Shown here one piece after another: positions 1,913 through 47,708 of a stretch of DNA of 64,000 bases. The notes beneath the pieces were generated by a model that was given only the letters and a program-made list of their open reading frames with translations, made no database searches and was not told the DNA's origin. The position numbers and the translations under genes were made by a program. Positions within the stretch are counted from its first letter, which is position 1. Every line of letters starts with the position of its first letter. Origin of the DNA: Macrostomum lignano (Eukaryota); assembly GCA_002269645.1 (NCBI GenBank), contig NIVC01001101.1, forward strand, positions 62,001-126,000, written 5' to 3'.

Positions 1913-2982
1913 CAGTGATTGTCTACCAAGAGTCAGGGCGGGGGGGGGTTGCCTACCAAGAGACAGGGGTACCAAGTAAGAGACACTCGGTGCGACACTA
2001 AATGTTCCAAATATTGGCACCCTTGCGCCCCCTCCAATTAAAATACCTGCGTATGCCTCTGACTGCAGTTTTCTGCAACTAGTGTTTGAGAGATTCTTTC
2101 TTCCCCAGCTGTGGCTCAGCAAGTACAGCAAGTGACTGACTCGCGTAATGAGCTCCCGCCAAAATGCCAATGGGATCCAAAACCAACTCAGCAGTGCTGA
2201 GTCGTCTGACGGAAAATTAACCATTAGCATTTTTTTGTTTTTGAGTCAATTTTAGTATCTGTATATTTCTCATTTGTAAATAAATATGCAAATAAATAAG
2301 AGTTATAAATGGAGCTTTGAGCTAATAAGCTAGACATATCAGATTATTGCGAACATATTTTCACATTTCTACAGATACTACAGAGTTACATGTACTACTG
2401 AGATCTGCAGACAATGGCACTAACTGACAGGTTGCCTTATATCAAGTGGCTGTCAAAATTGTAACCTATATTTTTATGGTAAAAAGTCAATTGTCGGCAT
2501 TTTTAACACCACCAGTTTTGGCGGTGCTGGTTGAAGGGCGCTCCGAGGTAAATCAGCCTCAAAGAAGACAAGCAACGGAATACTCGCTCGATAACGTCGG
2601 TTTTGGTTGCCAGGTGCGAACCGAGACGCGTTCTGTGCCGTACTTAGTTTTGCTGGCGTAAAATTAATTATAAGACAGAGGACAGTAAGTAAATTGGCTA
2701 TTGTTTCTGAGCGAGCTGGTAAGCGCTTGATTCGAGTTTATCAAGCTGAACTGGAGACTAGCTGAGATAAGCTTAGATGAGATTGGTAATGCGCTACATT
2801 TAGCTGCTCCTCTAAAGGAGAAATCTTCAATCTGATGCTCCACAAGCTGGCATATGGTCAATCGAGCACTGAACGACAAAAATAACTTCCTGTATTCCTA
2901 ACGCATTTAACGTCCTTTAACCTACGGGTACTTTAGCAAAGACTACTCAAGTAGAAAGACGGGAATTGGATTGCTTAGAAAA

Positions 2983-3494
<512 letters not shown>

Positions 3495-3509
3495 TGAGAA
3501 TGAAAATTT

Positions 3510-3918
3510 ACGCAACTGTGTGCGCCACCCGCGATGGCCGGTGCATTCTGGCCAGCTGCTCCGATGCCAGACTCCGCCTCATCGACCGGGACACTGGCGA
3601 CCTGCTGGCCAGCTACTCGGGTCACAGCGTGGCCGATCTGTCAGTTGAATGCGACGTGTCCGCAGGAGACTGGCTGGTTCTGTCCGGCTCGGCTGGCGCT
3701 CTGGCGAGCTGATCTGCTGGGATCTGCTCAGCGGCGAGCTGCGGTGCAGGCTGAGGCATCCCGCAGCTGAGCCCGCCAGGGCTGCAGTCAGGACTCAGGC
3801 TTCGGTGGTGCAGTCTGTGTCGGCTCATCCGAAACTGTGCAGAGTTCTCACCGCGATGGGCGATGCGGTGTTCTTGTGGGCAGATCCGGCCCATGCTATC
3901 GCTGATGAGCCTCAGTGA
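3510..3918 (+). pseudogene. WDR83: WDR83/MORG1 3' fragment with frameshift
   Basis: CATRDGRCILASCSDARLRLIDRDTGDLLASYSGH...VVQSVSAHP...LTAMG matches the WDR83 C-terminus. 1-bp deletion at ~3697 relative to the 15680-16086 copy. Confidence 0.75.
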
Positions 3919-4556
3919 CCTCTGGTGTCGTCTTGTGAAGTTTTTAATAAGCTGCATTTTTCTAGTATATCTGCTGTCTGTGCAGACTGAATTTTTCCTG
4001 TGCTGTAATGTACTGTGCTATTACAAGTGGAGCTATGACGTTTCTCAATAAAACCTAATGATTATCGTTTTCATATTTAGAAAATAAAAAGCAAGCATTT
4101 TTATTCATTTTTATTATATTTGGATTTAAGGCTGGCTCAGGCTCAGCTGCTTTAGTTTAGGAACTCTCTAAATATATGATTGTTGAAGCAGTATTTTTAG
4201 ATTTTGTGTTTTAAACAGGAAACATCAGAGTGAAATAGTGACAAGACTACAAATTGATGAGTGACAAGGCAGCTACAAATCGTTGTTGCTCAGTGCTACT
4301 ACAACTTGATATCAGTTACAGGGCTACAACAAATTAATACGAATGACAAGACTACTATGGATTTGAAATAGTTCAAATGGCTACTAAAAGTTTATTAGGT
4401 TGAAAGAGCTGCTACTCCAGTCGTTTCTCGTCGTGATGGTCGAGTGTCTCTGGCACCGCCGCGCGATGCTATGGTTTCACATTCATGTTTATGTTTATCT
4501 TAATATGCATAATGACGTTCATCGCCATATTCATATTGACCTTCATCTTCATCATC

Positions 4557-6380
4557 TTCTTCTTCTTCTTCTCCGTTTATCGCCTTGCGGCGTGGAGTGA
4601 ACAGCGTCAGGCTTCACCGCAAGTGCGTTTGTGTCGCGCCATGTTTGTCGCCGATAACGTTCTTCCGCACTTGTCGCATTCTGCTGTCTTCCTTCGGTAT
4701 TTTCTTGCTCTTCTCTTGTTCTCCTCCATCTCCGGTGGATTGTGGTGTTGTTCTTTACATGTCTTTCTGTGCCTCGCTAGGTTCGATTTTACGATTGTGC
4801 TTCCACATTGCTGACATTTTACTCTTGACGCATCTATTTCCGTCTCGCCTTGGCACACCTTCTCATGGTTTGCCAGGGTCGCTTCCTGTCGGAACTCCTT
4901 GTCGCATTTGTGGCATCTGAATTTCACCGGCTCTTTAAACACGCGATGCATCCTCTTTTGGTGGATGGTTAGTCCGCCCTTGCTTTTACACACTTTGCCG
5001 CAGAGTTCGTATTCGCATTTGAAGCCATCTCCAACCTCTCTCGGGTTCGTTTTTACGTGGTACCGTTCTTGACTTCGTTCGATCAGGCTGTTGTTACTGT
5101 CCGTCTTGGCCTTTTTTCCTTGCACTCTCTCCCACTCTTGTAGGTGTACAGTCCGCTGGTGTACTACGTTCCGCCAGTGTTTCCTGTCGAGAACGTGGCG
5201 TTCGATGTCTTGCGGTTCCATACCGGCTTCCCGGATGAGGCGCTTCCAGTAGGATATGGTGTTGTTTTTCCGTTTTTTGCGCTTAGGGATCCTTTCCAGG
5301 CCTCTGTACCACCCTAATACGGCTTGCTTTATTTGTCTGTCGTCTTCCATCCGTAGGACGTGGCCAATCCTTTTTAGGTGACTTTTCTCAATCTTTGTTC
5401 TTAATGACACAACACCTAGTTCGTTGCGGATATCTTGCATATTTACTCCTAGGCTTTCCATTTCGCGCAGCGGTTCCATTCTCTTGTTGGACCAAATGTT
5501 GCGGTATGTTTTGTCGATGAACTGTTGCATTTTCTTGATTTCGCCGAGCAGGAACGGGCGGGTGTTCGCATGGAACAGGAGTACACTTTCCACGCACGCC
5601 TCGACCACTTTAGCTTGTGTGGTCTTTTTCAGGCGGCATCGATGGAACCTTTTCCTGATCGCATTCCACGCTTTGGCGGCTCTCTGGATTCTTTGCTGTG
5701 TGTCGTATCTCCTATCCATCCACGACCCTAGGATGCGAGTTTTACCTCCGACGGATGTTCCTAGGGCCATCTCCTCCTGTTTCTCGTCATTTGTCAGTTC
5801 TTCGAACTTCTTCATATTCTCTTTGGTCGTTGTTAGGCTTCTCGTCAGTTCTCTGCCATTGCCTAGGATGGTGGTGTCGTCTGCAAAGAGCGATGAGGTC
5901 CACTTGACCGTTCGCATCTCCGAGTTGTACTGGTTGATTCTCTGAGGTGGCAAGGAGTGTCCAGGTAAGTACGTCCATTCCACCCCGCAGCTTAATCCTC
6001 TGCTGGCCGCTTCTGTCTCCCGAGTTTCTTCCGCTTTCCTGATGCTCGCCTGGTGGTAGATGTTAAATAATATCGGGGAAGTTGGGCATCCCTCGCGTAA
6101 GCCTCGCTCGGGGTAGCCATGTTTCGCTTGATTTCTCCTTGCCTTGCACTTTATACGCGGTATGTTCATGCAGGTCTTTCAGTTTTTCGATCGTCTCTTG
6201 CGGCATCTTGTACGCTTGGAGGATTCCCCACAGGATCGGCTTGCACACTCTCGGATATGCCTTACGGAGGTCTAGGAGGATTGCCGTTTCTGTGTCTTCG
6301 ATGTTGCAGTCTCCTGATGCTCTTTTTGTTTCCAGGTACTCGGCAATGTCCTCGTGCATCCTGGTGAATATCTGTGCGTT
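4557..6380 (-). mobile_element. 5'-truncated RTE-clade LINE (copy 1): RT C-half, four Zn fingers, 3' stem-loop, (GAA)5 tail
   Basis: GLREGCPTSPILFNIY, LFADD, IGHVLRMEDDRQIK and DRKHWR motifs. Near-identical to 16821-18643. One extra G at ~6110 frameshifts it. Confidence 0.95.
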
Positions 6381-8280
6381 CGTCTTCATCTTCATCTTCG
6401 TCTTCATCTTGATCTTCGTCTTCATCTTGATCTTGATCTTCGTCTTCATATTGATTTGGATCTTCGTCTTCATATTGATTTGGATCTTCGTCTTCATCTT
6501 GATCTTGATCTTCGTCTTCATATTGATTTGGATCTTCGTCTTCATATTGATTTGGATCTTCGTCTTCATCTTGATCTTGATCTTCGTCTTCATATTGATT
6601 TGGATCTTCGTCTTCATATTGATTTGGATCTTCGTCTTCATATTCATCATCGTATTCAAAGTCATCTCTGTTCACAAATTCGATTCGCCAGGTTGTAACA
6701 ATTACTCGACCATTCTCCACCTTTGCCGCTTTGTACTGAACACCTGCATCGGAGGACAGGATGTACTGCGGTGTTTCTGATGTCGGCCACAGTGTGAGTG
6801 AAGGTGCGCAGGGAGCCAGTTGAAATTCAGCTGGAACAGAGTTCTCCCCAGCCACGGCATAGGCATGGTCTTTTGTGTCACTGCACAAGCCCGGCGTCTG
6901 GCATGGTCCCATATAGAACGACCTTGAGTTGATCAGCTTCTTAGTAATGATGCAGATAGTGAAAACATTCCACCTATCAGACAAGAACAGCATCTGGTCT
7001 CTGACTGACATTTTCGAACCATCTCTCATGAGCTCACAACCACTGGGTATGGGAAAAGCCAGTTGAACCTTACCAGAGTCTTTCTCGACTCCCACAATGG
7101 CCAGATGTCGATCTGGCTTTTCAATTAGAGCAAACAGCTTGTCGCAGTTTCCAGCAATGCACCACAGCTCCGTAGCGCCTTCGTGCAACTCGGTGATGCA
7201 GATTCTTGACTTGAGAGCTCCGCTGAGGTCGGTCACTGTCACCGCTGTCTCCTGAGCGATGAACAGCAGCTGTCGCTCATTGTCGCAGTGGAGATCTCGG
7301 ATCGGCTGATCGGCCTCCCAGCTGCACGTCAGGCGTCCAACTTCTTTTGCATCATCGGAGAGCAGCAAAATTTTAAACGCCATGTCATTCTGGTTTTCCG
7401 GCAGTACCGAAACCCTTGATAATCTTTTATGCTGTTCTTGATCACTTTCAGGTTGTACAGCTACAAAGATACTCGGCTGTGGCAGACAGTTGCTGCAATC
7501 CCCAGCAGCCTTCTCAATCACACCTGACTCGTCAATGACAAAACCTGTGGTGTTGCTGCACACTGTCAGACAAAACGCCCTCTTCAGAATCTCTGGCCTC
7601 TTTGTACTCTGTTCTGCTTGAAGTCGAATTTCTTTTGTGCTTTTTTGTGCTTGAAGTAGAATTTCTTCATGAATCTTCCTAGAAACTGCAGCAGGATCAA
7701 ACTGCTCAACGAGTTTTCTAAGTAAAACCAAGTCAGCGCGCATTGCCGTCTCAAGCTCTCTGATTCTCGAGTTCAAATCCGGGTAAGCTGCGATTTCGAC
7801 TGTCTGACTTTCCTTATCCAATCTCACCAGATTCGAGTCCAGCTGCAATGTCTTCAGCCATCCCTCCATGCTCCTGTTGATGAGGAAGGCCTGCCTCGTG
7901 TTTTTGTCATCCTTGGCTCTCTTTAGCTCCTTCTCGAAGTCTTCCAGCTCTGAGACACTTGACAGATGGTCCATCAGTTGGTCATGCTGTTTGGTAACGA
8001 CAGCAACGAGCTCACTTTGACACCTGTCCAATGTCTCTCTCAGGTCGGTAAAGGTGTCATCGAGCAGCTGCAGGTCGGATGTGAGTCTCTGCTGCATCAG
8101 TCTCATGGGCTCCTGGTACTTCTTGAAGAGCTGCACTTTCTGGGCTACTCTGGCTTGAGCCTCGTCTACTTCGATGAAGTCTTGCTGCATGTGCAGGTCG
8201 CAGAGAGGCTGGCAGGTCACAGGCGACTCACCAACAGCGGGACTGCGGCAGAGGCGCACTGAACAGCTTTCTGTCTCCAT
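6262..8280 (-). CDS. B-box-like Zn motif / coiled-coil / predicted beta-propeller protein with acidic tail (copy G1); acidic tail interrupted by RTE
   Basis: Open from ATG 8280 (METESCSVRLC..CQPLCDLH, C-x4-C-x11-C-x3-C-x2-H), through a heptad-rich region and a beta-rich domain, to (EDEDPNQY/EDEDQDQD)n. Reads ~40 aa into the RTE and stops at 6262. The original end EDEGQYEYGDERHYAY* is displaced to 4500-4556. Confidence 0.75.
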   Translation of the reverse strand: METESCSVRLCRSPAVGESPVTCQPLCDLHMQQDFIEVDEAQARVAQKVQLFKKYQEPMRLMQQRLTSDLQLLDDTFTDLRETLDRCQSELVAVVTKQHDQLMDHLSSVSELEDFEKELKRAKDDKNTRQAFLINRSMEGWLKTLQLDSNLVRLDKESQTVEIAAYPDLNSRIRELETAMRADLVLLRKLVEQFDPAAVSRKIHEEILLQAQKSTKEIRLQAEQSTKRPEILKRAFCLTVCSNTTGFVIDESGVIEKAAGDCSNCLPQPSIFVAVQPESDQEQHKRLSRVSVLPENQNDMAFKILLLSDDAKEVGRLTCSWEADQPIRDLHCDNERQLLFIAQETAVTVTDLSGALKSRICITELHEGATELWCIAGNCDKLFALIEKPDRHLAIVGVEKDSGKVQLAFPIPSGCELMRDGSKMSVRDQMLFLSDRWNVFTICIITKKLINSRSFYMGPCQTPGLCSDTKDHAYAVAGENSVPAEFQLAPCAPSLTLWPTSETPQYILSSDAGVQYKAAKVENGRVIVTTWRIEFVNRDDFEYDDEYEDEDPNQYEDEDPNQYEDEDQDQDEDEDPNQYEDEDPNQYEDEDQDQDEDEDPNQYEDEDPNQYEDEDQDQDEDEDQDEDEDEDEDERTDIHQDARGHCRVPGNKKSIRRLQHRRHRNGNPPRPP
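6381..6655 (-). repeat. 24-bp coding minisatellite (GAAGACGAAGATCCAAATCAATAT / GAAGACGAAGATCAAGATCAAGAT)
   Basis: Direct; encodes EDEDPNQY/EDEDQDQD in the G1 frame. Confidence 0.95.
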
Positions 8281-9265
8281 GGCTTTCTGTATATGAGATG
8301 AATCTTCGCACAGCGAAATATCTATGTTTGTGGTTCTGTTTTTGTATCCTGCGGTGTGCGCAGCAGCTAGCAAGAATCAATGTACTGTCAATTTTGTGAC
8401 AATTGGTGTTTGAAGAATGGAACATGATGTATGCAGCATAAGATTAATGTACAAACTGCCTTACAAGGTACCGTAGATTATGGAAGAAAATTTGGGTTAG
8501 AAAATGAGTGTACTCTCTTGTAAAATAGAAAAAAAAGAAAACGAATGAGATGGAATTACGAGCGTAGATGCTAGCATAGCTCAGAACTTTAAGCTTCTGC
8601 TGTGTCGCAGAGAAGAAGTTTTCTCTCTTTGGTTATAAAGTATATAGGGTAATGACTATCAGAAGTCTATGCACAAATTACCACGGGCCTTACCGTTGTA
8701 CAAGTATGCGATGTCAGCTCTTAACGCTCTTATTTTAGGCAAAGTGACCATAATAAAGATTTTTTAAACATTTTAGAACTCTCTAGTAATATATGAGACT
8801 CTTCAGTCATCTATGAGAGTCTCCAGTCATATACTTTTACGTCTACAGTGGGAGCCATGTCGTTCCTCAAAAACTATTTTCTCAAACTTCTTGGTATATA
8901 CATACAATGATTTAGGTTTAATGAAGGTTTATGGTTTGATAACGCTCTAACAAAATTGTTATTAGAAACTCTGTCTTTTTCAAAAGTTTTATATTTAGTA
9001 CTTTTAACAGGACCCTGCAAAACGGCATTCGTAGTAATCGTAGTAATATCGTAGTATTAATATTAATATCGTATTAATATCGTAGTAATAAGGCCAGAAG
9101 AAATTGATATAAATGAGTGACAAGGCCACTACTAACCCAAAAAAGTAAAACGGAACAGAAAACTGTCTTTAAGTGTATTCTCATAATTATTTAGCATCCG
9201 ATACTCGAATGGTTCCTGCCGCTGCAGAAGCTATAGTTGGCTCTTTTTCCTTGCCGAAAATTGAA

Positions 9266-10882
9266 TCACCCTTCTTCGTCTTCGTCTTCATCTTCATTAC
9301 TGTTCACACAGTCAATACGGCAGGTTTTCACAATGACTCGACCATTCTCCACCTTTGCCACTTTGCACTGAGCGCCTGCATCAGAGGACAGGATGTACTG
9401 CGGTGTCTTTGATATCGGCTTTCGTGTCAGTGAAGGTGCGCAGATAGCCAGCTGAAATTCAGCTGGAGAAGAGTTCTCCCCAGCCACAGCATAGACCTGG
9501 TCTTTTGTGTCTCTGCACAAACCTGGCATCTGCCAGGGCCTCCGACGGAGCGACCTCGAGTTGATCAGCTTATTAGTAATGATGCAGACAGTGAAAACAT
9601 CGCGCCTATCAGACAAGAACAACATCTGATCTCTGACTGACATTTTCGTATTTTCTTTAACGAGCTCACAATCTCTGGGTATGGGACAAGCCAGTTGAAC
9701 CTTTCCAGAGTCTTTCTCGACTCCCACAATGGCCAGACTACTGTCTCGCTCTTCAACTAGAGCAAACAGCTTGTCGCAGTTTCCAGCAATGCAACACAGC
9801 TCCTTGGTGCCTTCGCGCAACTCTGTAATGCCGATTCTTGACTTGAGAGCTCCGCTGAGGTCGGTCACTGTCACCGATGTCTCCTGAGCGATGAACAGCA
9901 GCTGTCGCTCATTGTCGCAGTGGAGATCTCGGATCGGCTGATCGGCCTCCCAGCTGCACGACAGACGTCCAACTTCTTTGGCCTCATCGGAGAGCAGCAA
10001 AATTTTAAACGCCATGTCATTCGGGCTTGAACTGCTTTTATGTAATCTCTCGAAGCAGAGTTGCTGCTCTTGATCAGCTTCAGGTTGAACAGCTACGAAG
10101 ATACTCGGCTGTGGCAGACAGTGGCTGCAATCCTCAGTAGTCTTCTCAATCACACCTGACTCGTCTACAAAAAAACCTGTGGTGTTGCTGCACACTGTGA
10201 GACATGCTGCAGTCGTCTTCAGCCTCCTTGCCTCGATTTTGCTCTCTTCTGCTTGAAGTACAACTTCGTCATCAATCTGCCTAGAAACGGTAGCAGCATC
10301 AAACTGTTCAACGAGTTTTCTGAGTAAAACCAACTCGGCGCTCGTAGCGGTCTCAAGCTCTCTTATTCTCTAGTTCAAATCCGGGTAAGCTGCGATTTCG
10401 ACTGTCTGACTTTCCTTATCCAATCTCACCAGATTCGAGTCCAGCTGCAATGTCTTCAGCCATCCCTCCATGCTCCTGTTGATGAGGAAGGCCTGCCTCG
10501 TGTTTTTGTCATCCTTGGCTCTCTTTAGCTCCTTCTCGAAGTCTTCCAGCTCTGAGACACTTGACAGATGGTCCATCAGTTGGTCATGCTGTTTGGTAAC
10601 GACAGCAACGAGCTCACTTTGACACCTGGACAATGTCTCTCTCAGGTCGGCAAAGGTGTCATCGAGCAGCTGCAGGTCGGATGTGAGTCTCTGCTGCATC
10701 AGTCTCATTGGCTCCTGGTACTTCTTGAAGAGCTGCACTTTCTGGGCTACTCTGGCTTGAGCCTCGTCTACTTCGATGAAGTCTTGCTGCATGTGCAGGT
10801 CGCAGAGAGGCTGGCAGGTTACAGGTGATTCGCCAACAGCGGGACTGCGGCAGAGGCGCACTGAACAGCTTTCTGTCTCCAT
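9266..10882 (-). pseudogene. Paralog G2 of the B-box-like/coiled-coil/propeller family with a single in-frame TAG
   Basis: ORFs 10370-10975 and 9266-10333 are in the same frame, separated only by TAG at 10370-10372 (TCG in G1 and G4). Ends EDEDEDEEG*. Confidence 0.8.
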
Positions 10883-11307
10883 GGCTGTCTGTATTTGAGA
10901 TGAATCTTCGCACAGCGAACTATCTATGTTTGTGGTTGTGTTTTTGTATCCTGCGGTGTGCGCAGCAGCCAACAAGAATTAATGTACTGTCACGTTTGTG
11001 ACGATTGTTGTTTGCAGAATACAGTGTTTGCGGCATGAGATAAATGAACAGACTGCCTTTCACTGTACAGTTTTTATGAAAAAATTAGGTTTAAAAATGG
11101 GTGTATTCTCTTGAAAAATAGACAAGAGAAAAAGCGAATAAGATGGAATGAGATGCTACCATAGCTGAGAACTTTAAACTTATGCGGTGTTGCAGAGAAG
11201 CAGTTTTCTCTCTGGTTATAAAGTTTTTAGGGTTATGAGTATCACAAGTCAATGCACGAATTAACACGGGCCTTACCGTTGTACGAGTAAATGATGTCAG
11301 TTCTCAA

Positions 11308-14300
11308 CACAGAATATACGGAATGCCGATTCGATCATTTTTGTTTAAAAAATCGGTACAAGAATTAAAATCACACCAGCCCACACTTGTTGTAAAGCTT
11401 TGATAGGTAGGGCTTGAGGTTTTGCCATAGACTATTCTATGAATGAAAATGAAAAAGGAAAAGGAAAGGAAAGGTTTTCACTTGACTGAAAATTAAGTTC
11501 AGTCTGAGCTTTTCTGCGCAGCATGGTTGGAAAATCCAGACTCCAGTGCGCAGCCTATGGATGCCCAAACTATGCCTACAAGTGCCCTCCGGACACCCGA
11601 TTTCATCGATTTCCGTCAAGCCGCGAGAGGTGAGTAAATTTATTATATGAGGGGTCTTTCAAAAGTTCGTAGAGTAGCCATCTCCCCTTGAAAATTTTCA
11701 CAAGTATTATTCCATATATCTACAGCCTGCAGCTAAATTTTCAGCAAAATTGACTGAAATGACCGCGAGAAATCTGCGATCAAACTCTAAACCCCCCACT
11801 GCATTTACTGCATTCTCCAAGGAGCAGTCAAGAGCCATTTGACTACGAACTACAACCAAGTCTACGAACTTTTGAAATACCCTCGTACAACCGGCATCGC
11901 AATTCACACAATTAAAAACATGGCTAATCTTCAATTATGGCGCAAATTCAAATTTCAAATCCGAAGACTGGGCCAGACGCATTTTCCGAGCCGATCTTCT
12001 TGGAAAAATAAATGAAGGCAAATGGAAGTGTGCCGTTGTGTGCAGCCACCATTTTACGGATGAAATGTACTCATGTCCAAGACTCCGACATGATACATCC
12101 ACCAGGCTGTCTGACCGTGCGTACCCCAGCCTTCAATTTTACAAGGAAATTCCAGAGCCTCGGCAGCGGCCACCTCCGAAGTGTCGAGAAACGACTGACT
12201 CGGGATCGCACCCAGTCGTGCATAGGGTCGAGAGTGATGTCGGTGTTGCCAAAACTGAAAGCGAAAGTCTTCCGGCAAGAGGCCGCAAGCCGTCATCAGC
12301 TGCATACTTATCGGCGAGATTGAGGCAGCAGAACCGAAAATTCAGCAATTTGAACCGAAAACTGGCGCTTGTTCAAGCTAAATATAAAACGCTGCTTGCA
12401 GAAAATGCAAAGCTCCGCAATGATCGAGTGAAATGCCACTGCTCACAACTGAGTCAGATGACCCCAGTGGTGAAGGAATTCATCAAGGATCAGTTGCAGA
12501 ATTCGAAAAAGCGCCGTCCGACTTGGTCGCGTGCAACCCAACGCCTGGCAATTGGTCTGTTGCATTACAGTCCGAGATCACATCGATTTATGCGCGCATC
12601 GGTTTTCTCTTGCCATGTAGATCGACACTTCGACAGAAAATTGGATCTTGTGTGCGCAATTCTGGCATCTGTCCAATAATTGAGGGCAGTGTTGCAGCAG
12701 CTGCAGTTTCAATGACGGAAGCTGAGAAAATGTGCACCATCAGCCTTGATGGCATGGCAATCACACCGTCGTTAAGATTTGATCCAAATGCAGACCAAAT
12801 TATCGGATTTGAGGATTGTGGCCCTAGTGCGGGTGGTAGGACCTCGACGGTTGCAGACGAGCTGGTTGTCGTCTGGGTCAGAGGATTCTGCTCGAACTGG
12901 AAGCAGCCAGTCGGATTCTAACTCTTGCACCATGCACCAGGAGCTCTGAGATTCAAGCAAATTCTCACTGAAGCTGTCGCCGCTGTCACAAGAATGGGCC
13001 TGAAAGTGTACGCGATTGTCTGCGACCAAGAAGCGACACAGTGGAAGTGCATTCGTGATCTGGGCGCAAATGCCGACAGTCCTGAGATGAGCATCGAAAT
13101 CGACGGCAGTGTCGTTCGAATTTCAGCTGTAGTGGATGTTCCTCACTGTTTGAAGAACATGCGAAACGCGCTCATGAAATTATTCATTTCATTCATTTTG
13201 ATGACAATGGACAGCGGCAGATCGCTTGCTGGGCTGACATCTTAGCTGTCGCAGAAACTGAATTTAGTAAGCCTGATCAATTCCGACTGGTGCCCAAGTT
13301 AAAGGAAGTTCACGTCAATCTTACAATTGGCAAGAATATGAGCGTCAAGCTAGCTGCTCAGGTCTTGTCACGAACCAGGGCACAGGCTTTGCGTGTCTAC
13401 GTTGAGTACGGTGTAATTGTCAGTGACACTGCTCTGCATACCGCCAGGTTCTGCGAGCTTGTTGATGCTCTCTTCGATTCGTCAAATGGCAGACTGTCTC
13501 AAGATGGAATTACAATTGACAACAGGGACGCGAAGAATTCCGAAATCGATTATTGGTGTAACTGGTTGCAGGCTTTGGAGTTTCATAAGGATGGGGTCAA
13601 AGTGAACGGAATGAAGTTCAATACTGGCTGGCAATACAGTTTGAGGTCGATTCAGCAAATCGCAGAGCAAGCCCTTTAAGTCGACAGTACTGAGAAGGTG
13701 ATGGTGAGACAGCTAACACAGGATCACGTCGAAAACGGATTTTATTGCATCCGGCGTAGAGGCGGCTTCAATGACAGACCGGAGTGCCGAGAAGCCGTGG
13801 CGGCACTGAGGTCTTTATCTGTCAACCACTTGTTGGGCTGTCTATCGCAGACCAACAGCAACTGCGAGAACGATGGCAGCACCTTGCTGACCGAGTTTCA
13901 GGCCAAAGTAACAGCAAGTGCAAGTGCGCCCAGTCCTGGTCCGCAGGGCGATGGTCTGATTTCAGCAGACTCCACTGAGGAAGCTCAAGACCTGCCTGCT
14001 GGCACAGTCGGCAGCATTGAGAATGAGAAGTGCGCCTACATTGGAGGCTGGCTGCTTTTCAAGCTATTCAAATCTGAGGAAAAGTGCGAGGAGTGCCAGC
14101 AGTCGTTAAAAGGCGATGGCTCAGGAGAGATGCGCTTCCTGCAGCTCAAGAACGGACAGGGCGGGACTGGAAAACTGATCATTCCCAACAAGGCAGTCAT
14201 ATCTGCAGTCTGTCAGATGGAGCGCACCTTCACGACAACGGACAAAGAGCTGTTCGTTCTGAAGGACGTGAGCAAACGGCTTCAGGAAAAGTTCTTTCCC

Positions 14301-14731
14301 ATTGTTCTTGCTAATATTCAGACGCACAGCTCGGATCACGGCGAACGCTGTGCTAAGGCAATGGCCAAGTTGTTTGCCAGACTTCGCCTGCATCACTGGT
14401 GCAACAGTCAGAGGACGCTCGCTCAGCAGAGAAAGCGGGGGCGTACAACAGGAATAAAGAGAGCTGAATAGAGGAAGAAGCTGATGCGATTAAATGCTGT
14501 TTAACTGTAGTTTAACTGTGATGCGAATGAATTCTGTTTAACTTGAGTTCTTCATTGTTTGGTTTGTTTAGATGATAAACTACGACAAAATGATTAAATT
14601 TTACATTTGGTCCTCCAGGTTACTTATTATTCTTCGCTAATTTATACTACTGGCCATAGAATTCACAACAAGAGTAGTGCATACGAATTTTAATTCGGCT
14701 TCAGGGAAATCGCTCGATTTGGCATTCTGTG
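11308..14731 (+). mobile_element. P-element/THAP9-like DNA transposon, degenerate
   Basis: THAP domain MVGKSRLQCAAYGCPN..FHRFP (exon 11523-11629, GTGAGT donor) plus W..RIFRADL..VCSHHF..AYPS. Transposase motifs include SLDGMAI, WKQPVG, VCDQ, DVPHCLKNMRNAL, MSVKLAAQVLS and TQDHVENGF. It carries frameshifts and stops. Ends CACAGAAT..ATTCTGTG are defined by the empty paralogous site at 8711-8780. Confidence 0.9.
11648..11885. mobile_element. Mariner-type MITE (238 bp) nested in the THAP intron
   Basis: TIRs TGAGGGGTCTTTCAAAAGTTCGTAG / CTACGAACTTTTGAAATACCCTCG, flanked by TA on both sides. Confidence 0.85.
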
Positions 14732-14879
14732 CTCATTTTATGCTAAGTGGCCCTAATAAAGTTTTAAAACTTTCCAGTCCTCTATGAAAGTCAGCCTGCA
14801 GTAGTTATAGTGTAGATGGATGCTGAGTCCTTCATGCTGCTCTCTCTTATCCCAATAAATGCTGCATCGAGTCCTCCCC

Positions 14880-16086
14880 ACCTGTTCACCTGCCTGCGAA
14901 GATACCGCAGCCACCTGGCTCGAGTTGGCGCATTGGCCTTCAGTCCGGACGCCACCCTGCTGGCCAGCGGTTCAGTGGACTGCACAGTCCGCCTGTGGGA
15001 TCTGCGCAGTAAAGCTCAAGCGCCTGTGCAGCTGCTCACCGATGCCAGGGACTCCGTCACGGCGGTGGCTGTTCACTCCTGGCGAATCTATACGGCTAGT
15101 CTGGATGGACGCTTGCGCTGCTACGATGCCAGGAAAGGTGCCGTTGCGGAGGGGATATTTGGTTTGAAATCTGTTTTGTTAAAAAGTATATATGTGCCAT
15201 TTGGTGTACATGTAGACCTCACAAGGACCGCTGTTCATTCCTGCGTCAGTCAGGATCGTGAGCCGATTGGGAAGAATGGCCCTCAGCGCTGCCTGTGGAC
15301 GATGCGCCGAAGGCAGTCATTATTTAAGGGAGCTGGGCCTGACCTCAAATCAAGCTTGAGTATTTCGAAATGAGACTCATGACTTTGATTTGCGATTTGT
15401 AAACAACTTTTCTCTTTTGCTACGCGCAGTGTCTCTGGGCCCGTTCTATAAAGCAATCGTAAGATAAGATCGTTCTTAGCTCCTATCTCCGTAGTGTAAA
15501 AGTTGTGACGTACGATTGAACCTACGCTACGACAGCTTTATAGTACGACCCCTCTGTCTTTATCAGTTCTACTTTGCAGGGAAGTTGTACTCGAGCAGTG
15601 TCTCAGATCGAGGCAACAGCCGAGCCATAAACGAACCCCGCAGGCCGCCTCGCAGAGGACAATCTGTCCAAGCCTCTCATCGGCCTGTGCGCCACCCGCG
15701 ATGGCCGGTGCATTCTGGCCAGCTGCTCCGATGCCAGACTCCGCCTCATCGACCGGGACACTGGCGACCTGCTGGCCAGCTACTCGGGTCACAGCGTGGC
15801 CGATCTGTCAGTTGAATGCGACGTGTCCGCGGGAGACTCGCTGGTTCTGTCTGGCTCGGCTGGCGGCTCTGGCGAGCTGATCTGCTGGGATCTGCTCAGC
15901 GGCGAGCTGCGGTGCAGGCTGAGGCATCCCGCAGCTGAGCCCGCCAGGGCTGGAGTCAGGACTCAGGCTTCGGTGGTGCAGTCTGTGTCGGCTCATCCGA
16001 AACTGTGCAGAGTTCTCACCGCGATGGGCGATGCGGTGTTCTTGTGGGCAGATCCGGCCCATGCTATCGCTGATGAGCCTCAGTGA
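14880..16086 (+). pseudogene. WDR83: WDR83/MORG1 partial gene (central and C-terminal WD40 repeats, 5' end missing)
   Basis: RRYRSHLARVGALAF..LASGSVDCTVRLWDLRS..PVQLLTDARDSVT..SLDGRLRCYDARKGAVAE joined to DNLSKPLIGLCATRDG.. is colinear with WDR83. The ~500-bp intervening segment starts GG instead of GT. Confidence 0.8.
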
Positions 16087-16538
16087 CCTCTCGTGTCGTC
16101 TAGTGAAGTTTTTAATAAACTGCATTTTTCTAGTATTCCTGCTGTCTGTGCAGACTAAATTTATCCTTTGTGTAATGTACTGTGCTATTACAAGTGGAGC
16201 TATGACGTTTCTCAATAAAACCTAATGATTATCGTTTTCATATTTAGAAAATAGCAAGCAAGCATTTTTATTCATTTTTAGTATATTTGGATTAAAGGCT
16301 GGCTCAGGCTCAGCTGCTTTAGTTAAGGCACGCTCTAAATATATGATTGTTGGAGACAGTATTTTTAGATTTTGTGTTTTAAACAGGACACAGCAAAGTG
16401 GCATAGTGACAAGACTACAAATTGATATGAGTGACAAGGCAGCTACAAATTGATGTGGCACAGTGCTACTGCAACTTGATATCAGTTACAGGGCTACAAC
16501 AAATTAATATGGATGACAAGACTACTATGGATTTGATC

Positions 16539-16820
16539 CTAATATGGATATTGATATTCATCGTCATATTCATATTGACCTTCGTCTTCATCTTGATCTT
16601 CGTCTTCATATTGATCTTGATCTTCGTCTTCATATTGATCTTGATCTTCGTTTTCATATTGATCTTGATCTTCGTCTTCATATTGATCTTGATCTTCGTC
16701 TTCATATTGATCTTGATCTTCGTCTTCATATTGATCTTGATCTTCGTCTTCATATTGATCTTGATCTTCGTCTTCATATTGATCTTGATCTTCGTCTTCA
16801 TCTTGATCTTGATCTTCGTC
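16539..16820 (-). repeat. 3' half of the G3 acidic coding minisatellite (EDEDQDQY)n and natural stop (..EGQYEYDDEYQYPY*)
   Basis: 24-bp unit GAAGACGAAGATCAAGATCAATAT, the same unit as 20925-21160 on the other side of the RTE. Confidence 0.9.
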
Positions 16821-19800
16821 TTCTTCTTCTTCTTCTCCGTTTATCGCCTTGCGGCGTGGAGTGAACAGCGTCAGGCTTCACCGCAAGTGCGTTTGTGTCG
16901 CGCCATGTTTGTCGCCGATAACGTTCTTCCGCACTTGTCGCATTCTGCTGTCTTCCTTCGGTATTTTCTTGCTCTTCTCTTGTTCTCCTCCATCTCCGGT
17001 GGATTGTGGTGTTGTTCTTTACATGTCTTTCTGTGCCTCGCTAGGTTCGATTTTACGATTGTGCTTCCACATTGCTGACATTTTACTCTTGACGCATCTA
17101 TTTCCGTCTCGCCTTGGCACACCTTCTCATGGTTTGCCAGGGTCGCTTCCTGTCGGAACTCCTTGTCGCATTTGTGGCATCTGAATTTCACCGGCTCTTT
17201 AAACACGCGATGCATCCTCTTTTGGTGGATGGTTAGTCCGCCCTTGCTTTTACACACTTTGCCGCAGAGTTCGTATTCGCATTTGAAGCCATCTCCAACC
17301 TCTCTCGGGTTCGTTTTTACGTGGTACCGTTCTTGACTTCGTTCGATCAGGCTGTTGTTACTGTCCGTCTTGGCCTTTTTTCCTTGCACTCTCTCCCACT
17401 CTTGTAGGTGTACAGTCCGCTGGTGTACTACGTTCCGCCAGTGTTTCCTGTCTAGAACGTGGCGTTCGATGTCTTGCGGTTCCATACCGGCTTCCCGGAT
17501 GAGGCGCTTCCAGTAGGATATGGTGTTGTTTTTCCGTTTTTTGCGCTTAGGGATCCTTTCCAGGCCTCTGTACCACCCTAATACGGCTTGCTTTATTTGT
17601 CTGTCGTCTTCCATCCGTAGGACGTGGCCAATCCTTTTTAGGTGACTTTTCTCAATCTTTGTTCTTAATGACACAACACCTAGTTCGTTGCGGATATCTT
17701 GCATATTTACTCCTAGGCTTTCCATTTCGCGCAGCGGTTCCATTCTCTTGTTGGACCAAATGTTGCGGTATGTTTTGTCGATGAACTGTTGCATTTTCTT
17801 GATTTCGCCGAACAGGAACGGGCGGGTGTTCGCATGGAACAGGAGTACACTTTCCACGCACGCCTCGACCACTTTAGCTTGTGTGGTCTTTTTCAGGCGG
17901 CATCGATGGAACCTTTTCCTGATCGCATTCCACGCTTTGGCGGCTCTCTGGATTCTTTGCTGTGTGTCGTATCTCCTATCCATCCACGACCCTAGGATGC
18001 GAGTTTTACCTCCGACGGATGTTCCTAGGGCCATCTCCTCCTGTTTCTCGTCATTTGTCAGTTCTTCGAACTTCTTCATATTCTCTTTGGTCGTTGTTAG
18101 GCTTCTCGTCAGTTCTCTGCCATTGCCTAGGATGGTGGTGTCGTCTGCAAAGAGCGATGAGGTCCACTTGACCGTTCACATCTCCGAGTTGTACTGGTTG
18201 ATTCTCTGAGGTGGCAAGGAGTGTCCAGGTAAGTACGTCCATTCCACCCCGCAGCTTAATCCTCTGCTGGCCGCTTCTGTCTCCCGAGTTTCTTCCGCTT
18301 TCCTGATGCTCGCCTGGTGGTAGATGTTAAATAATATCGGGGAAGTTGGGCATCCCTCGCGTAAGCCTCGCTCGGGTAGCCATGTTTCGCTTGATTTCTC
18401 CTTGCCTTGCACTTTATACGCGGTATGTTCATGCAGGTCTTTCAGTTTTTCGATCGTCTCTTGCGGCATCTTGTACGCTTGGAGGATTCCCCACAGGATC
18501 GGCTTGCACACTCTCGGATATGCCTTACGGAGGTCTAGGAGGATTGCCGTTTCTGTGTCTTCGATGTTGCAGTCTCCTGATGCTCTTTTTGTTTCCAGGT
18601 ACTCGGCAATGTCCTCGTGCATCCTGGTGAATATCTGTGCGTTGTCCGCCGTCGATCTTCCACTTCGGAAGCCGTTCTGGTTGTCATCTAGCGCTCCTAT
18701 CACTTCTGCCCAATTCCGGATTCTGGTAGCCAGAATGCGGGCTAGTATTCTGCTGAGCATAGGTAATAGGCAGATTCCTCTGTAGTTATTCATGTCTGCT
18801 CGGTCTCCCTTCTTGAATAATGGAATAATGAGTCCAATTTTCTCGTTGTCATTCCATTTGTGCGCTCGCTCTTCAAACAGAAAGCGGATCCTTGCATACA
18901 GTTCTTTACGTACTGCGTCTGGGGCGATTCTAATGTATCTGATACGAAGTTCGTCCTCCCCGGGACTTCGGTCTTTCATTTCTTTAATGGCTGCTTCTAT
19001 TTCAAGGTCCGTTGGGACTGTCGTCAGTTGTGTTCTTGTCTTTTCCGTATCTTCCTGTTCCTTCATGGTTTTGATTGATCTGATCAGTTCGGCTGTTTCG
19101 GTTTCCGGGTTTTCCAATCTAGTCCCTTGGATTCTTTCCAAATGGTTCTTGAAGTCATCTTCGTCAAAGTTGGTGTCTGTTCCGCTGTTGTTCCACTTTC
19201 CTCGCTTGTCCAACATCCTTAATTTCTCATAGACCACTGCGATCTGGCCTCTATCCGCGGCATTTCTGCATTCCTCAGCGATTGCGTCCCACCAGTTTTC
19301 CTCCCATTCCGCGAGCTTCTTTTTTATCTTTTTTCGGATAGTTGTAGTCGCTAGGCGGGCTAGGGTCGTCGCCGCCGAGGTGGGGTCTTCTCTGACGCAT
19401 GCGTTGCGATGGGCCAGCGTTTCTGCCAGCTCTCTTTGTTGTGCCTCGTGTTCGTCCAGGTGGGGGGCCATCCACGGGTTCGTTACTCGTGTCACCGTGC
19501 CGCATACGTGCCTTGCACTGTCGATGATTGAGTTTTGAACGTCTGTCCATTTCATGTCTGTGAGGTTCCTGTCCTGCTTCTCTCTTAGTTCTTCGAATCT
19601 TGTTAGTATTTCTTTTTTTAACTCAGATGCCTTGTTCTCGTCGTGGAGTTTCCTCCAGTCGATGTTCTTCCGCCTGCGTCTCGTCTGGTCCTTGACGTAC
19701 TTGTTCCGTGTCCAGCCCCGAATTATGACGGTTTTGGGCAGGTGGTCCGACAAGTTGCACTTGTTGTGGTTCTTTATCGTTTTGACCAGGCGGTGTCTGT

Positions 19801-20608
19801 CCTGCACGCGAGTTATGAAGCCGTCTATCTCATACCACGTGCCGGTGCTTGGATTTCTCCAGGTTCCCCGGTTTTTTGACTTGTGGAACGAGTTGATCCA
19901 GGCTAGATCATTTGTCACTAACCAGTTTGCGAGGTCTTCGCCCTGCTGGTTGGTCAGTGCTAAGCCAAACTTTCCTCGATGTTGCGCGTCTGTGCTTTCA
20001 AATTTGCCAATCTGTGCGTTCATGTCACCGCCAATGATGATTGGTTTGTTCTTTCTTTCATTATGAATGTAACGTTCCAGGGTGTTTCTGAGCTCTGCTA
20101 GTTCCGTTTCGTAGTCCGGAGTGCCTCTAACTGGGCAGTACACGCTGATCAATGTCGCGTCGTATATTTCTATCATGATCGCTCTGTTCGTAATATTCTT
20201 TTTTGATCCGCTGTCCTTCCACGTCTGGTACAATTCCTGGTTTAGGATGATGCCTGTTTTCTTGCCGTGAATCAGGAATGAATTTTGTTTCGGTTGGTGG
20301 TAACTTCTTATTCCGTCTGACGGTGCCGATAACTCCGAGATGAGGGCTACCTCCCAATTCTCACTCATAATCTTTTTTGCGATCTCTCCAAAACGCGTGC
20401 CGAACACGTTTGCCCGCTGGACATTCCATGTTGTTATTCTCAGCTCGTTGTTTAATGTTTCTCTGCGTTTGTTAATCTTCTTCGTTCTTCTTGTTCCACG
20501 GCGTCGGGTTCTTCTGATTAGTCTGCTTTTCTTCTCTTTTTGGGTTTTCGGTCGTTTTGTGCTTTTTCTTGGGTTTTCGGATTCTTTCTTTGGTCTTTCC
20601 TTCCTGTT

Positions 20609-20650
20609 TGGTCCTGGGTTCTTCTCTACTGTCGTCAGCTGTGCTTTCAC
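20609..20650 (-). other. 2A/StopGo-like motif (VKAQLTTVEKNPG/P) in the RTE ORF upstream of APE
   Basis: 7 of 8 positions of D(V/I)ExNPGP match, with T in place of D. Position (N-terminal to APE) matches known LINE 2A-like sequences. Confidence 0.6.
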
Positions 20651-20846
20651 TTCCGCCGACCTTTGTTTCCGGCTTGGTCTTGTGCGGCTCTGCTGTTCCT
20701 CTAGCTCTCTACCTTTGTGCTGTCCACTGGTTTTTGCCTGGTTAATCTCGGTACCCAGGTCGGCTACTTCTGGGTACCACGAGTGAAAAGGGCCGGTGTC
20801 GTCGTACTGGCTTCCGCCAGTGGCTTCGATCCATGGTCCCTTCCGT

Positions 20847-20924
20847 TTGCTCCCTTCTTTGCCAAGACTTTTTCGGGTCTTGTCCACTGGCCACCTCGTG
20901 AAGGTGGGGGAACAATCGGCCAGC
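20847..20924 (-). ncRNA. HDV-like (nested double-pseudoknot) self-cleaving ribozyme at the RTE 5' end
   Basis: Hand-folded: P1 GCUGGCC/GGCCAGU (G1.U wobble); P2 UUGUUCCC/GGGAGCAA; P3 ACC/GGU; L3 UUCACGA; P1.1 UC/GG; A.G pair then P4 CAAGAC/GUCUUG; J4/2 CAAA with the candidate catalytic C at 20861. Confidence 0.85.
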
Positions 20925-22762
20925 TTGATCTTCGTCTTCATATTGATCTTGATCTTCGTCTTCATATTGATCTTGATCTTCGTCTTCATATTGATCTTGA
21001 TCTTCGTCTTCATCTTGATCTTGATCTTCGTCTTCATATTGATCTTGATCTTCGTCTTCATATTGATCTTGATCTTCGTCTTCATCTTGATCTTGATCTT
21101 CGTCTTCATATTGATCTTGATCTTCGTCTTCATCTTGATCTTGATCTTCGTCTTCATATTCATCATTGTATTCAAAGTCATCTCTGTTCACAAATTGGAT
21201 TTGCCAGGTTGTCACAGTGACTCGTCTATTCTCCACCCTTGCCACTTTGTACTGAACACCTGCATCTGAGGACAGGATGTACTGCGGAGTCTCGGATGTC
21301 GGCCACAGTGTCAGTGAAGTTGCGCAGGGAGCCAGTTGAAATTCTGCTGCAGAAGAGTTCTCCCCAGCCACGGCATAGGCCTGGTCTTCTGTGTCACTGC
21401 ACAAGCCCTGCGTCTGGCATGGTCCCATACAGAACGACCTTGAGTTGATCAGCTTCTTAGTAATGATGCAGATAGTGAAAACATTCCACCTATCCGATAA
21501 GAACAGCATCTGATCTTTAACTGACATTTTGCTATCTTCTTTGCAAGCTCACAACTGGGTATGGAAAAAGCCAGTTGAACCTTACCAGAGTCTTTCTCGA
21601 CTCCCACAATGGCCAGATTTCTGTCTGGCTCTTTAATTAAAGCAAACAGCTTGTCGCAGTTTCCAGCAATGCAACACAGATCTGTTGCGCCTTCGTGCAA
21701 CTCGGTGATGCAGATTCTTGACTTGAGAGCTCCGCTGAGGTCGGCCACTGTCACCGATGTCTCCTGAGCGATAAACAGCAGCTGTCGCTCATTGTCGCAG
21801 TGGAGATCTCGGATCGGCTGATCGGCCTCCCAGCTGCACGTCAGGCGTCCAACTTCTTTTGCATCATCGGAGAGCAGCAAAATTTTAAACGCCATGTCAT
21901 TCGGGCTTGAACCGCTTTCATCATCTATTGTCGCTGAGAGGAGTTGCTGTCGTTGATCAGCTTCAGGAAGGACAGCTACAAAGATACTGGGCTGTGGCAG
22001 ACAGTCGCTGCTATCCTTATTAGCCTTCTCAATCACACCTGACTGGTCAATGACAAAACCTGTGGTGTTGCTGCACACTGTTAGGCATACTGCAGTTGTT
22101 AGCACCTCTGCCTTGCTTATTCTCTCTTCTGCTCGAAGAGCAATTTCTTCATCAAAACGCCTAGAATCAGCAGCAGCATCAAACTGCTCAGCGAGTTTTT
22201 TGAGTAGAACCAACTCAGCTCTCAGTCCGGTCTCAAGCTCTCTTATTCTCTAGTTCAAATCCGGGTAAGCTGCGATTTCGACTGTCTGACTTTCCTCATC
22301 CAATCTCACCAGATTTGAGTCCAGCTGCAATGTCTTCAGCGATCTCTCCATGCTTCTGTTGATGAGGAAGGCCTGCCTCGTGTTTTTGTCATCCTTGGCT
22401 CTCTTTAGCTCTTTTTCAAAGTCATTCATGTCTGAGACAATTGACAGATGGTCCATGAGTTGGTCATGCTGCTTGGTAACGACAGCAACGAGCTCACTTT
22501 GACACCTGTCCAATGTCTGTCTCAGGTCGGTAAAGGTTTCGTCGAGCAGATGTAGGTCGGATGTGAGTCTCTACTGCATCAGTCTCATAGGCTCCTGGTA
22601 CTTCTTGAAGAGCTGCACTTTGTGGGCTACTCTGGCTTGAGCCTCGTCTACTTCGATGAAGTCTTGCTGCGTGTGCAAGTCGCAGAGAGGCTGGCAGGTT
22701 ACAGGCGACTCGCCAACAGCGGGACTGCGGCAGAGGCGCATTGAACAACGAGCGGATTGCAT
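20925..22762 (-). pseudogene. Paralog G3 of the B-box-like/coiled-coil/propeller family
   Basis: MQSARCSMRLC.. with stops at 22571 and 22250 and a frameshift at ~21530. The acidic repeat is split by RTE copy 2. Confidence 0.85.
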
Positions 22763-47464: not shown

Positions 47465-47708
47465 CAGGGGCGACCACCAAGAAAGAGGGGGCGACTACCA
47501 AGAGAGAGGGGGCGACCACCAAGAGAGAGGGGGGCCGACTACCAAGAAAGAGGGGGCGACTACCAAGAGAGAGGGGGGGCGACTACCAAGAGAGAGGGGG
47601 CGACCACCAAGAGAGAGGGGGGGGCGACTACCAAGAAAGGGGGGGCCGACTACCAAGAAAGAGGGGGCGACTACCAAGAGAGAGGGGGGGCGACTACCAA
47701 GAGAGAGG
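47465..47708. repeat. G-rich ~21-bp minisatellite, paralog of 1662-1912
   Basis: Direct. Confidence 0.95.

Follow-up and report, generated by a model that had tools for sequence, protein, structure and literature searches.

How did two nearly identical copies of one retrotransposon come to lie inside the acidic, protein-coding repeat tails of two related genes of Macrostomum lignano? The question is raised by a stretch of 64,000 nucleotides (the window; contig NIVC01001101.1 of assembly GCA_002269645.1, positions 62,001 to 126,000 of the forward strand), a repeat-rich piece of eukaryotic DNA with four TRIM-like paralogs, G1 to G4, all on the minus strand. The tails of G1 and G3 are each interrupted by a copy of a retrotransposon without long terminal repeats (non-LTR), with one open reading frame (ORF) and an endonuclease of the apurinic/apyrimidinic (APE) type, truncated at the 5' end in G1 (copy 1) and full length in G3 (copy 2). 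Here, we argue, with a probability of about 0.72, that the two copies are independent, very recent insertions, made by target-primed reverse transcription, of one active APE-type, single-ORF family whose lineage homes, in a fixed orientation, to (GAT)n/(GAN)n repeats.

Each copy lies in sense, on the same strand as its host gene. The initial annotation of the window had given the position and strand of each copy and its placement in the acidic tails of G1 and G3, all of which was reproduced with BLAST and Tandem Repeats Finder (TRF), and had counted only four differences between the copies over ~1.8 kb. Across the shared 1.83 kb, we likewise find three substitutions (5189/17453, 5548/17812 and 5914/18178 in copies 1 and 2, respectively) and one indel, an extra G at 6110. 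The host DNA was said to have diverged far more than the element, and it has: substitution divergence is 0.16% in the element versus 4.3-11.6% in the host flanks and gene bodies, with 95.7% identity between the downstream flanks (3519-4366 versus 15686-16536) and 88.4% between the gene bodies (6405-8265 versus 20921-22747). Each copy also carries a private disabling change, in copy 1 the frameshift caused by the extra G at 6110 and in copy 2 an in-frame TGA at 18176-18178 (the substitution at 18178), which interrupts an otherwise open frame of 1350 codons. Given the 0.16% divergence and a private disabling mutation in each copy, the family appears to have been active very recently.

The junctions of the two copies have little in common. 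Directly 3' of the tail, in the orientation of the element, the DNA reads GATGATGAAGATGAAGGTCAA in G1 versus GAAGACGAAGATCAAGATCAA in G3, and the immediate flanks of copies 1 and 2 are likewise dissimilar (GATGATGAAGATGAAGG versus GAAGACGAAGATCAAGATCAA). Copy 1 is cut at element position ~2283 and joined to host repeats via at most 2 nt of microhomology. Copy 2 is bounded by a direct repeat that might be a target-site duplication but is ambiguous, because, given the 24-bp period of the array, a target deletion of 8-9 bp fits equally well. No tract of near-identity between the two loci crosses the ends of the element at either junction. Because the junctions, the truncation points and the positions within the arrays all differ, the comparison of the two loci identifies the copies as two recent independent insertions, and neither as a shared event nor as a product of conversion. 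Recent independent insertion had been proposed in the initial annotation and is borne out by the contrast between a full-length and a truncated copy, by the dissimilar junctions and by the private mutations; a shared insertion point, which it had listed as the contrary outcome, was looked for, and both junctions and array positions were found to differ. Its alternative, ectopic conversion through the repeat, is not supported, because the near-identity stops at the element ends without a conversion tract across either junction and because the truncated end would need a non-homologous endpoint.

No further copies or fragments were found in the window or in L008, a related 21.6-kb M. lignano locus from the same assembly, and exact searches with a 25-mer and a 23-mer from the 3' end of the element yielded no match in metagenome contigs or viral contigs. 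Searches of a protein collection with the element protein gave no match above 54% identity and none from M. lignano. L008 was considered as an empty allele and rejected; it is a diverged duplicate (88-98% identity) and does not provide a true empty site.

Both copies hit a rare target. Tracts rich in GAN codons account for 1374 of the 128,000 strand-positions of the window (1.07%), and both copies lie inside such tracts, in sense, with the repeat on both sides of the element; under uniform insertion, two independent sense-orientation hits would have a post hoc probability of ~1e-4. For comparison, 31 distinct loci of related elements (35-54% amino acid identity) were gathered from ENA, JGI, Logan and NCBI assemblies. 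A locus was scored as positive when at least four in-phase GAT codons occurred within the 30 nt directly after the tail, with 300-nt windows outside the junctions as the background. A (GAT)n-like microsatellite (GATGATGGTGATGATG...) directly follows the tail in 17 of the 31 loci and in 1.25% of the background windows (binomial P ~1e-24, for loci that are not all independent). In all positive loci, the repeat is on the sense strand, the antisense (ATC) motif reaching the threshold in 2/31, and most of these loci lie outside any evident gene. Repeats thus flank 2/2 copies of the M. lignano family, where n is too small, 0-1 of 2 copies of the closest family and 17/31 loci of the pooled relatives; the label "target-specific" has been applied to families with the repeat in >20% of flanks (PMC4494074). 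Because the relatives lie mostly inside (GAT)n repeats, the placement of the M. lignano copies is better read as a repeat-homing habit than as chance.

Within this lineage, six tail motifs, (GAA)n, (GACA)n, (GACAA)n, (GACCA)n, (GATAC)n and (AGATTCA)n, go with one target. The repeat is also found upstream of the 5' ribozyme of the element (described below) in L001, L013, L027, L028 and L088; the element in L001 is bounded at either end by a target-site duplication that is not itself repeat, GATAGAAGTGGTG; and in L001, L010 and L088 different families are stacked head to tail within one microsatellite. The repeat is therefore the target and not a part of the element; the possibility that the GAT repeat is the element's own tail was rejected on account of its presence 5' of the element and of the duplication in L001. 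Of the repeat targeting suggested in the initial annotation, the targeting itself draws strong though indirect support from the 17/31 relative loci in sense-oriented (GAT)n-like repeats, but (GAT)n/(GAN)n describes the target better than the proposed GAAGAY does. The preferred strand, GAN, is the strand of Asp and Glu codons, and therefore an acidic coding repeat would be entered in sense; for the same reason, a coding repeat that is long and acidic, like the tail of G1 or G3, offers a large target.

Three other histories of the two copies were weighed. A single ancestral insertion could have been spread by segmental duplication or ectopic gene conversion, with a later deletion producing the truncated copy. 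The two loci are indeed paralogous and share a repeat family, ~10 repeat units separate the gene body from the element in both, both copies end in a (GAA)5 tail, and M. lignano has many recent duplications, one example being L008, which copies part of this region at 93-98% identity. This history is highly improbable, however, with an element that is ~25-70 times less diverged than the surrounding DNA, dissimilar sequence directly 3' of the tail, a ~130-bp block (4366-4500) between the G1 tail and the shared flank, and a paralogous copy, L008, that has no element. It would further require two separate deletions and a non-homologous end, given that the truncated 5' end of copy 1 adjoins host repeats for which copy 2 offers no homology partner. 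It is also unlikely that the insertions were independent but random and are seen in acidic tails merely through tolerance. Against such survivorship stands the fact that, although most of the 64-kb window is tolerant intergenic and transposon DNA, the two copies both fall in the ~1% of GAN repeat, in sense, and the fact that relatives in other hosts share the (GAT)n association, mostly outside genes and with strand specificity. What speaks for it is that the tails are hypervariable and evidently dispensable (the G1 counterpart in L008 has a Q-rich tail), that both host ORFs are open up to the element and that there are just two events.

Also unlikely, if slightly less so, is real targeting driven mainly by RNA-DNA pairing of the (GAA)n tail with a nicked GAA target, with no sequence recognition by the protein. 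In RTE-type elements, tail repeats correlate with the first base of the target-site duplication (PMC6007223); here, both junctions offer GAAGAC/GAAGAT, to which (GAA)5 can pair with 5-6 nt, GA is present in every tail unit of the clade, and the junctions fall between GA and T. Yet families that share just the dinucleotide GA with the target are still found in (GAT)n, and 2 nt cannot specify a microsatellite, whereas directed nicking is indicated by the strand specificity and by the repeat at either end of the element. Complementarity between tail and target had been put forward as a guide in the initial annotation, which correctly gave (GAA)5 as the end of the element; as the main guide it fails, because (GACA)n, (GACCA)n, (GATAC)n and (AGATTCA)n tails share the (GAT)n target. 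Pairing alone cannot specify the target, since families with unrelated tails have it in common. From these comparisons of sequences, we consider targeting to be probably real and largely protein-directed, with pairing of 2-6 nt of the tail only able to assist.

Which part of the protein would read the repeat is a question with two candidate answers. After the reverse transcriptase (RT), the protein extends for ~190 additional residues that contain four zinc fingers and are kept in all relatives, and the finger array matches the sequences of tandem DNA-binding arrays in PDB, ZNF568 and CTCF, with E-values of 1e-9 to 1e-7. In fingers 3 and 4, Asn at +3 and Arg at +6 are nearly invariant across the lineage, and position -1 is often Thr or Ser. 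Asn+3/Arg+6 reads 5'-GA-N (GA-N/GAT) in the canonical C2H2 code, and fingers 3-4 are thus a plausible and good candidate for the repeat reader, judging from their sequence. The endonuclease is an equally serious candidate, because Asn+3/Arg+6 also occurs in families that are not seen in repeats. The zinc-finger recognition suggested earlier is accordingly favored by the "GAN" code of fingers 3-4 and disfavored by the same residues in non-repeat families. If the fingers read the repeat, the element would be a natural zinc-finger-guided retrotransposon, and the target choice of an APE-type element could be tested by finger swaps.

The anatomy of the element was read from copy 2. Its one ORF of 1350 codons (16871-20923) begins at nucleotide 2 without a start codon, Met first occurring at codon 186. 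The first 85 nucleotides fit a hepatitis delta virus (HDV)-like self-cleaving ribozyme, predicted with a nested double-pseudoknot fold of helices P1-P4, G at +1 and C in J4/2. P1 pairs GCUGGCC with GGCCAGU, including a G1.U wobble, P3 pairs ACC with GGU, P4 pairs AAGAC with GUCUU, and P2, found by inspection and in a minimum free energy fold, pairs UUGUUCCC with GGGAGCAA over 5-8 bp. The Rfam model RF02682 is matched over its whole length (31.6 bits, E = 5e-4), and a covariance model built solely from the 5' end of a relative (the L001 family) gives the window sequence 19.8 bits (E ~0.003-0.006). Over four families, in an alignment that was model-guided and thus fitted to the ribozyme model, 98.6% of cells are paired versus 28-39% in slid controls, 6/15 pairs show compensatory changes, and P1, P3 and P4 covary. 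The searches differed in reach: at the gathering threshold, Rfam reports nothing in the window; an E-value search with Rfam over 60 kb of relatives lost the ribozymes; the covariance model seeded on one family missed L013, L060 and L084, the ribozymes of which were seen by eye; descriptor scans were too loose or too strict; and a MAFFT alignment of the ribozymes was wrong.

Downstream of the ribozyme, the 2A-like motif TVEKNPGP is matched by NPGP at the same place in the relatives L001, L009, L013, L027, L028, L037, L054 and L060, with the variants DVEKNPGP, IEKNPGP, IESNPGP and IEPNPGP; versus the 2A consensus D(V/I)ExNPGP, the window motif has Thr in place of Asp. The endonuclease and RT domains follow (RVT_1 E-values of 2.7e-15 for copy 2 and 1.6e-6 for copy 1), and no Pfam match to an RNase H domain was obtained in either part of the ORF. 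The 3' end of the element is CGGA(GAA)5. The short 3' untranslated region (UTR) contains a small hairpin, CGCC-GCAA-GGCG, followed by ATAAACGGA; the motif GGCGATAAA recurs in relatives, and the hairpin and a GCGAYAAA motif are common to L085, L088, L011 and L001. At 16836-16862 (minus strand) and at the 3' ends of these four loci, the hairpin is followed by GGCGAYAAA just before the tail. The hairpin motif is probably the element by which the RTs of this lineage recognize their RNA.

Several observations weigh against homing to (GAT)n/(GAN)n and against the ribozyme-dependent way of life proposed below. The M. lignano sample consists of two copies only, and a small number of metagenome projects, probably covering few host species, supplied many of the relative loci. 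The closest family (P0055/P0043; L085 and L086), with 50-54% amino acid identity and the same 3' motif, is not found in GAT repeats: one copy is followed by a (GAA)16 tract and then unique DNA, and the other is almost tailless and in unique DNA. Five of the six copies of the P0008 family are in unique DNA, and Convolutriloba, Symsagittifera and Branchiostoma each contributed one copy that lies outside repeats; the fingers of P0008 and of these three nonetheless keep Asn+3/Arg+6, in copies outside repeats. For the ribozyme, the RF02682 match, at 31.6, falls short of the gathering score of 44, and the non-pseudoknot fold of the region is ordinary (z = -1.4). The frame of the copy 2 element is +1 relative to the acidic frame of the host, and there is therefore no read-through fusion at that locus.

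With these points in mind, we infer from sequence the following life cycle for the family, in which co-transcription, the activities of the ribozyme and 2A motif, nicking, the function of the fingers and the protein part that reads the repeat are all predicted. Lacking an evident promoter, and any AUG ahead of codon 186, the element would be transcribed as part of a host mRNA, from which the ribozyme would cleave the transcript exactly at the first base of the element. Translation would start independently of a cap, and a leader peptide would be shed via 2A. The protein might then nick the bottom, pyrimidine-rich (ATC/TTC-type) strand of the repeat, and the nicked end, paired over 2-6 nt with the GA-containing RNA tail, would prime cDNA synthesis. 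Sense entry would suit an element that, like R2, L1Tc and ribozyme-bearing RTEs (PMC6765202), has a 5' ribozyme but neither a promoter nor a start codon. The components have precedents, as the HDV-like ribozymes of R2, L1Tc and RTE-type elements free promoterless elements from co-transcripts (PMC6765202) and 2A peptides are found at the N-terminus of single-ORF APE-type elements (PMC3708506). More tentatively, this may be a widespread, promoterless metazoan lineage in which a Krueppel-type finger array homes to one-strand (GAT)n/(GAN)n, so that the element enters acidic gene tails in sense and lives off host transcription via its ribozyme and sometimes off the host frame via 2A. If so, it would be a gene-tail-parasitizing counterpart of R2 in ribosomal DNA, with a modular and potentially re-programmable DNA reader.

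Relatives add observations on frame, ribozymes and shared targets. Reading in frame with the acidic frame of the host was tried as a rule and rejected; it holds for L001 and L054 and fails for copy 2 of the window, L013, L027 and L037. In L054 (158-301), 75 codons upstream of a P0001-family element form an open frame that includes the acidic patch EEDAEDDEEV and is in frame with the element ORF, and the flank in L001 encodes poly-Asp in the frame of the element; these two loci may represent occasional in-frame entry into coding acidic tracts. Elements of the P0008 family (L002-L007; 36% amino acid identity) start with ACTTGCGACAATG, have their own ATG and no ribozyme, and end in (GACAA)n, and in this family the loss of the ribozyme and the loss of the repeat association seem to go together. 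A ~330-bp element in L001 (5231-5558), whose head is ribozyme-like (47 bits, model R2) and whose tail is (GACAA)3, shares its (GAT)n microsatellite with a full-length P0001 element; it is probably a derivative that has lost internal sequence and autonomy, comparable to the short internally deleted elements (SIDEs) of R2. At L088 (6124-6330) and L010 (2926-3110), 10-40 nt of (GAT)n separate a (GAA)n-tailed element from the ribozyme head of another family behind it, head-to-tail pile-ups in which several families are competing for one microsatellite.

Microsatellite-specific non-LTR elements are known, and few of them are of the APE type. Koshi and Kibi, of the Tx1 clade, and related crocodilian Tx1 families are specific for (TTC)n, (TC)n and (TTCC)n (PMC4494074, citing Kojima & Fujiwara 2004). 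Like the M. lignano element, they combine an APE-type endonuclease with a fixed orientation in a purine/pyrimidine-rich simple repeat, and (TTC)n is the complement of (GAA)n; they differ in belonging to an L1-group clade, whereas the target of the M. lignano lineage is (GAT)n/(GAN)n and includes protein-coding repeats. We know of no report of a 5' ribozyme, a 2A peptide or a C-terminal finger array in Koshi or Kibi. Other microsatellite-specific elements are Dong/R4, with (TAA)n, HERO families, and Togen, with (TG)n (PMC4640811); these also use simple repeats as a safe multicopy target but have restriction-like endonucleases and other targets. As in microsatellite-specific families generally, the lineage described here keeps one orientation with respect to the repeat strand, and the repeat flanks the element at either end.

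In its predicted way of life the element resembles R2, which is promoterless and co-transcribed, with an HDV-like ribozyme exactly at the 5' junction, no conserved AUG and fingers that bind the target (PMC6765202, PMC3774820). Shared features are the 5' ribozyme, dependence on a host transcript (predicted here), an ORF open from the 5' end, and fingers, but R2 has a restriction-like endonuclease, N-terminal fingers with a Myb domain and a single 28S site, as opposed to the APE domain, C-terminal fingers and repeat target of the M. lignano element. The order of parts is that of the trypanosome L1Tc/Ingi elements, namely a 5' HDV-like ribozyme, an N-terminal 2A, APE and RT (PMC6765202, PMC4035085, PMC3708506), and C-terminal C2H2 fingers. 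L1Tc differs in having an RNase H domain, a poly(A) tail and little target specificity, with fingers that act as a nucleic-acid chaperone. Its C-terminal C2H2 fingers were reportedly described by Heras et al. in 2005. The RNase H downstream of RT that characterizes the Ingi/L1Tc clade is absent from the Pfam matches of the M. lignano element.

The RTE clade (RTE-1, Bov-B and schistosome SR2/SR3) is similar in its one long APE and RT ORF, very short 3' UTR, simple-repeat tail and frequent 5' truncation, and some RTE elements carry an HDV-like ribozyme at the 5' end and rely on read-through transcription (PMC6765202). The M. lignano element likewise has a single ORF with an N-terminal APE domain and RT, and a short 3' UTR with a short tandem repeat instead of poly(A). 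RTE elements, however, are ~3.2 kb long and end soon after RT with no four-finger extension and weak target preference, and 2A has not been reported in that clade (PMC3708506); the ~190 residues and four fingers after RT, together with the 2A, are atypical of it. In its finger domain the element thus departs from the RTE clade, a name that the initial annotation had given to both copies. In the literature, we found no described lineage that combines a (GAT)n/(GAN)n target with a four-finger array, a 5' ribozyme and 2A, although Repbase Reports and subscription journals could hold one.

The host genes have been changed by these insertions. The G1 protein is 81% identical to BOX15_Mlig031113g1 and 37% identical to M. 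lignano "TRIM2." The array is a coding minisatellite with a period of 24 bp and a unit of E-D-E-D-Q-D-Q-Y/D (TRF and ORF translation). The original stop of G1 is 17 codons beyond copy 1, and the insertion of copy 2 cost G3 half of its acidic array. At both loci, the host ORF is open as far as the element and then continues into element-derived peptides of ~38 and 60 residues. G2 (tail 9266-9300) and G4 (tail 48517-48545) have short acidic tails of ~8 codons and no element, as first annotated. L008 is collinear with part of the window, and its G3-like paralog has a 2-unit acidic tail, whereas its G1-like paralog has a Q-rich repeat; on this comparison, the C-terminal tails of the TRIM-like family are hypervariable, with fast turnover. 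Coding low-complexity tails can be remodeled in this way, both host proteins now ending in element-derived peptides, and in the M. lignano genome, which is highly duplicated, insertional variation may be concentrated at long acidic repeats. The coordinates of all features are given in Table 1.

Table 1. Coordinates of the retrotransposon copies, host genes and repeats in the 64,000-nucleotide window
Feature	Position	Strand	Details
Copy 2, full-length non-LTR retrotransposon	16821-20924	minus	4104 bp; self-BLAST, sequence reading
HDV-like self-cleaving ribozyme (predicted)	20840-20924	minus	nucleotides 1-85; starts at the exact first base of the element
2A-like motif TVEKNPGP	20609-20632	minus	ORF codons 95-102 (translation)
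APE-type endonuclease domain	19736-20431	minus	Pfam Exo_endo_phos_2 (3.5e-11), Exo_endo_phos
RT domain, broken by TGA 18176-18178	18032-18811	minus	Pfam RVT_1
Four C-terminal zinc fingers	16883-17281	minus	one C2H2, three C2HC; Pfam zf-C2H2 7.6e-9
3' UTR and tail	16821-16870	minus	UTR of ~35 nt (16836-16870); (GAA)5 (16821-16835)
Possible target-site duplication of copy 2	16809-16823, 20925-20939		15-16 bp, two arms; TTGATCTTCGTCTTC on the plus strand
Copy 1, 5'-truncated	4557-~6381	minus	3' 1.83 kb only; without ribozyme, 2A and APE
G1	6643-8725	minus	TRIM-like M. lignano paralog; body 6640-8373; ORF 6262-8373
G1 minisatellite, gene side of copy 1	6382-6660	minus	10.6 units at 6395-6648 (TRF; ORF 6262-8373)
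G1 tail remainder, far side of copy 1	4500-4556	minus	~57 bp; original C-terminus ...DDEDEGQYEYGDERHYAY, then stop
G2	9275-11308	minus	TRIM-like paralog
G3	21159-~23100 (body from 21165)	minus	TRIM-like paralog
G3 minisatellite, gene-proximal half	20925-21164	minus	10.0 units of 24 bp at 20924-21164 (TRF)
G3 minisatellite, distal half	16540-16820	minus	12.0 units at 16542-16823 (TRF, sequence); original C-terminus ...EDEGQYEYDDEYQYPY, then stop
G4	48563-50133	minus	TRIM-like paralog
~0.7-kb repeat copies	25009-25798, 27956-28616, 36078-36797, 42852-43515, 46034-46791, 55979-56799

The paralogs differ in other ways as well. In L008 (14290-16110), the G1-like gene ends in a Q-rich coding repeat of QQYQL/PQQNQL units, not in an acidic minisatellite, and this repeat is followed by a ~33-bp satellite of ~35 copies. 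G2 is broken into two ORFs in the window (9266-10333 and 10370-10975; region 9266-10975), whereas its L008 counterpart, P0018, is a single protein of 538 amino acids, and the window copy of G2 may thus be a pseudogene, to judge from its reading frames.

The remainder of the window contains further repeats. ORFs at 12038-14471 weakly match P-element/THAP9-like transposase domains (Tnp_P_element and TNP-like RNase H C-terminal), and this block is 98% identical to L008:6423-9340. A repeat of ~0.7 kb is present in at least six copies, in both orientations and with 84-93% identity, each copy overlapping an ORF of ~250 amino acids without a Pfam match. A long (AGAT)129 microsatellite and, at two places, a 22-bp G-rich satellite complete the set (2982-3495; 1662-1912; 47467-47709).

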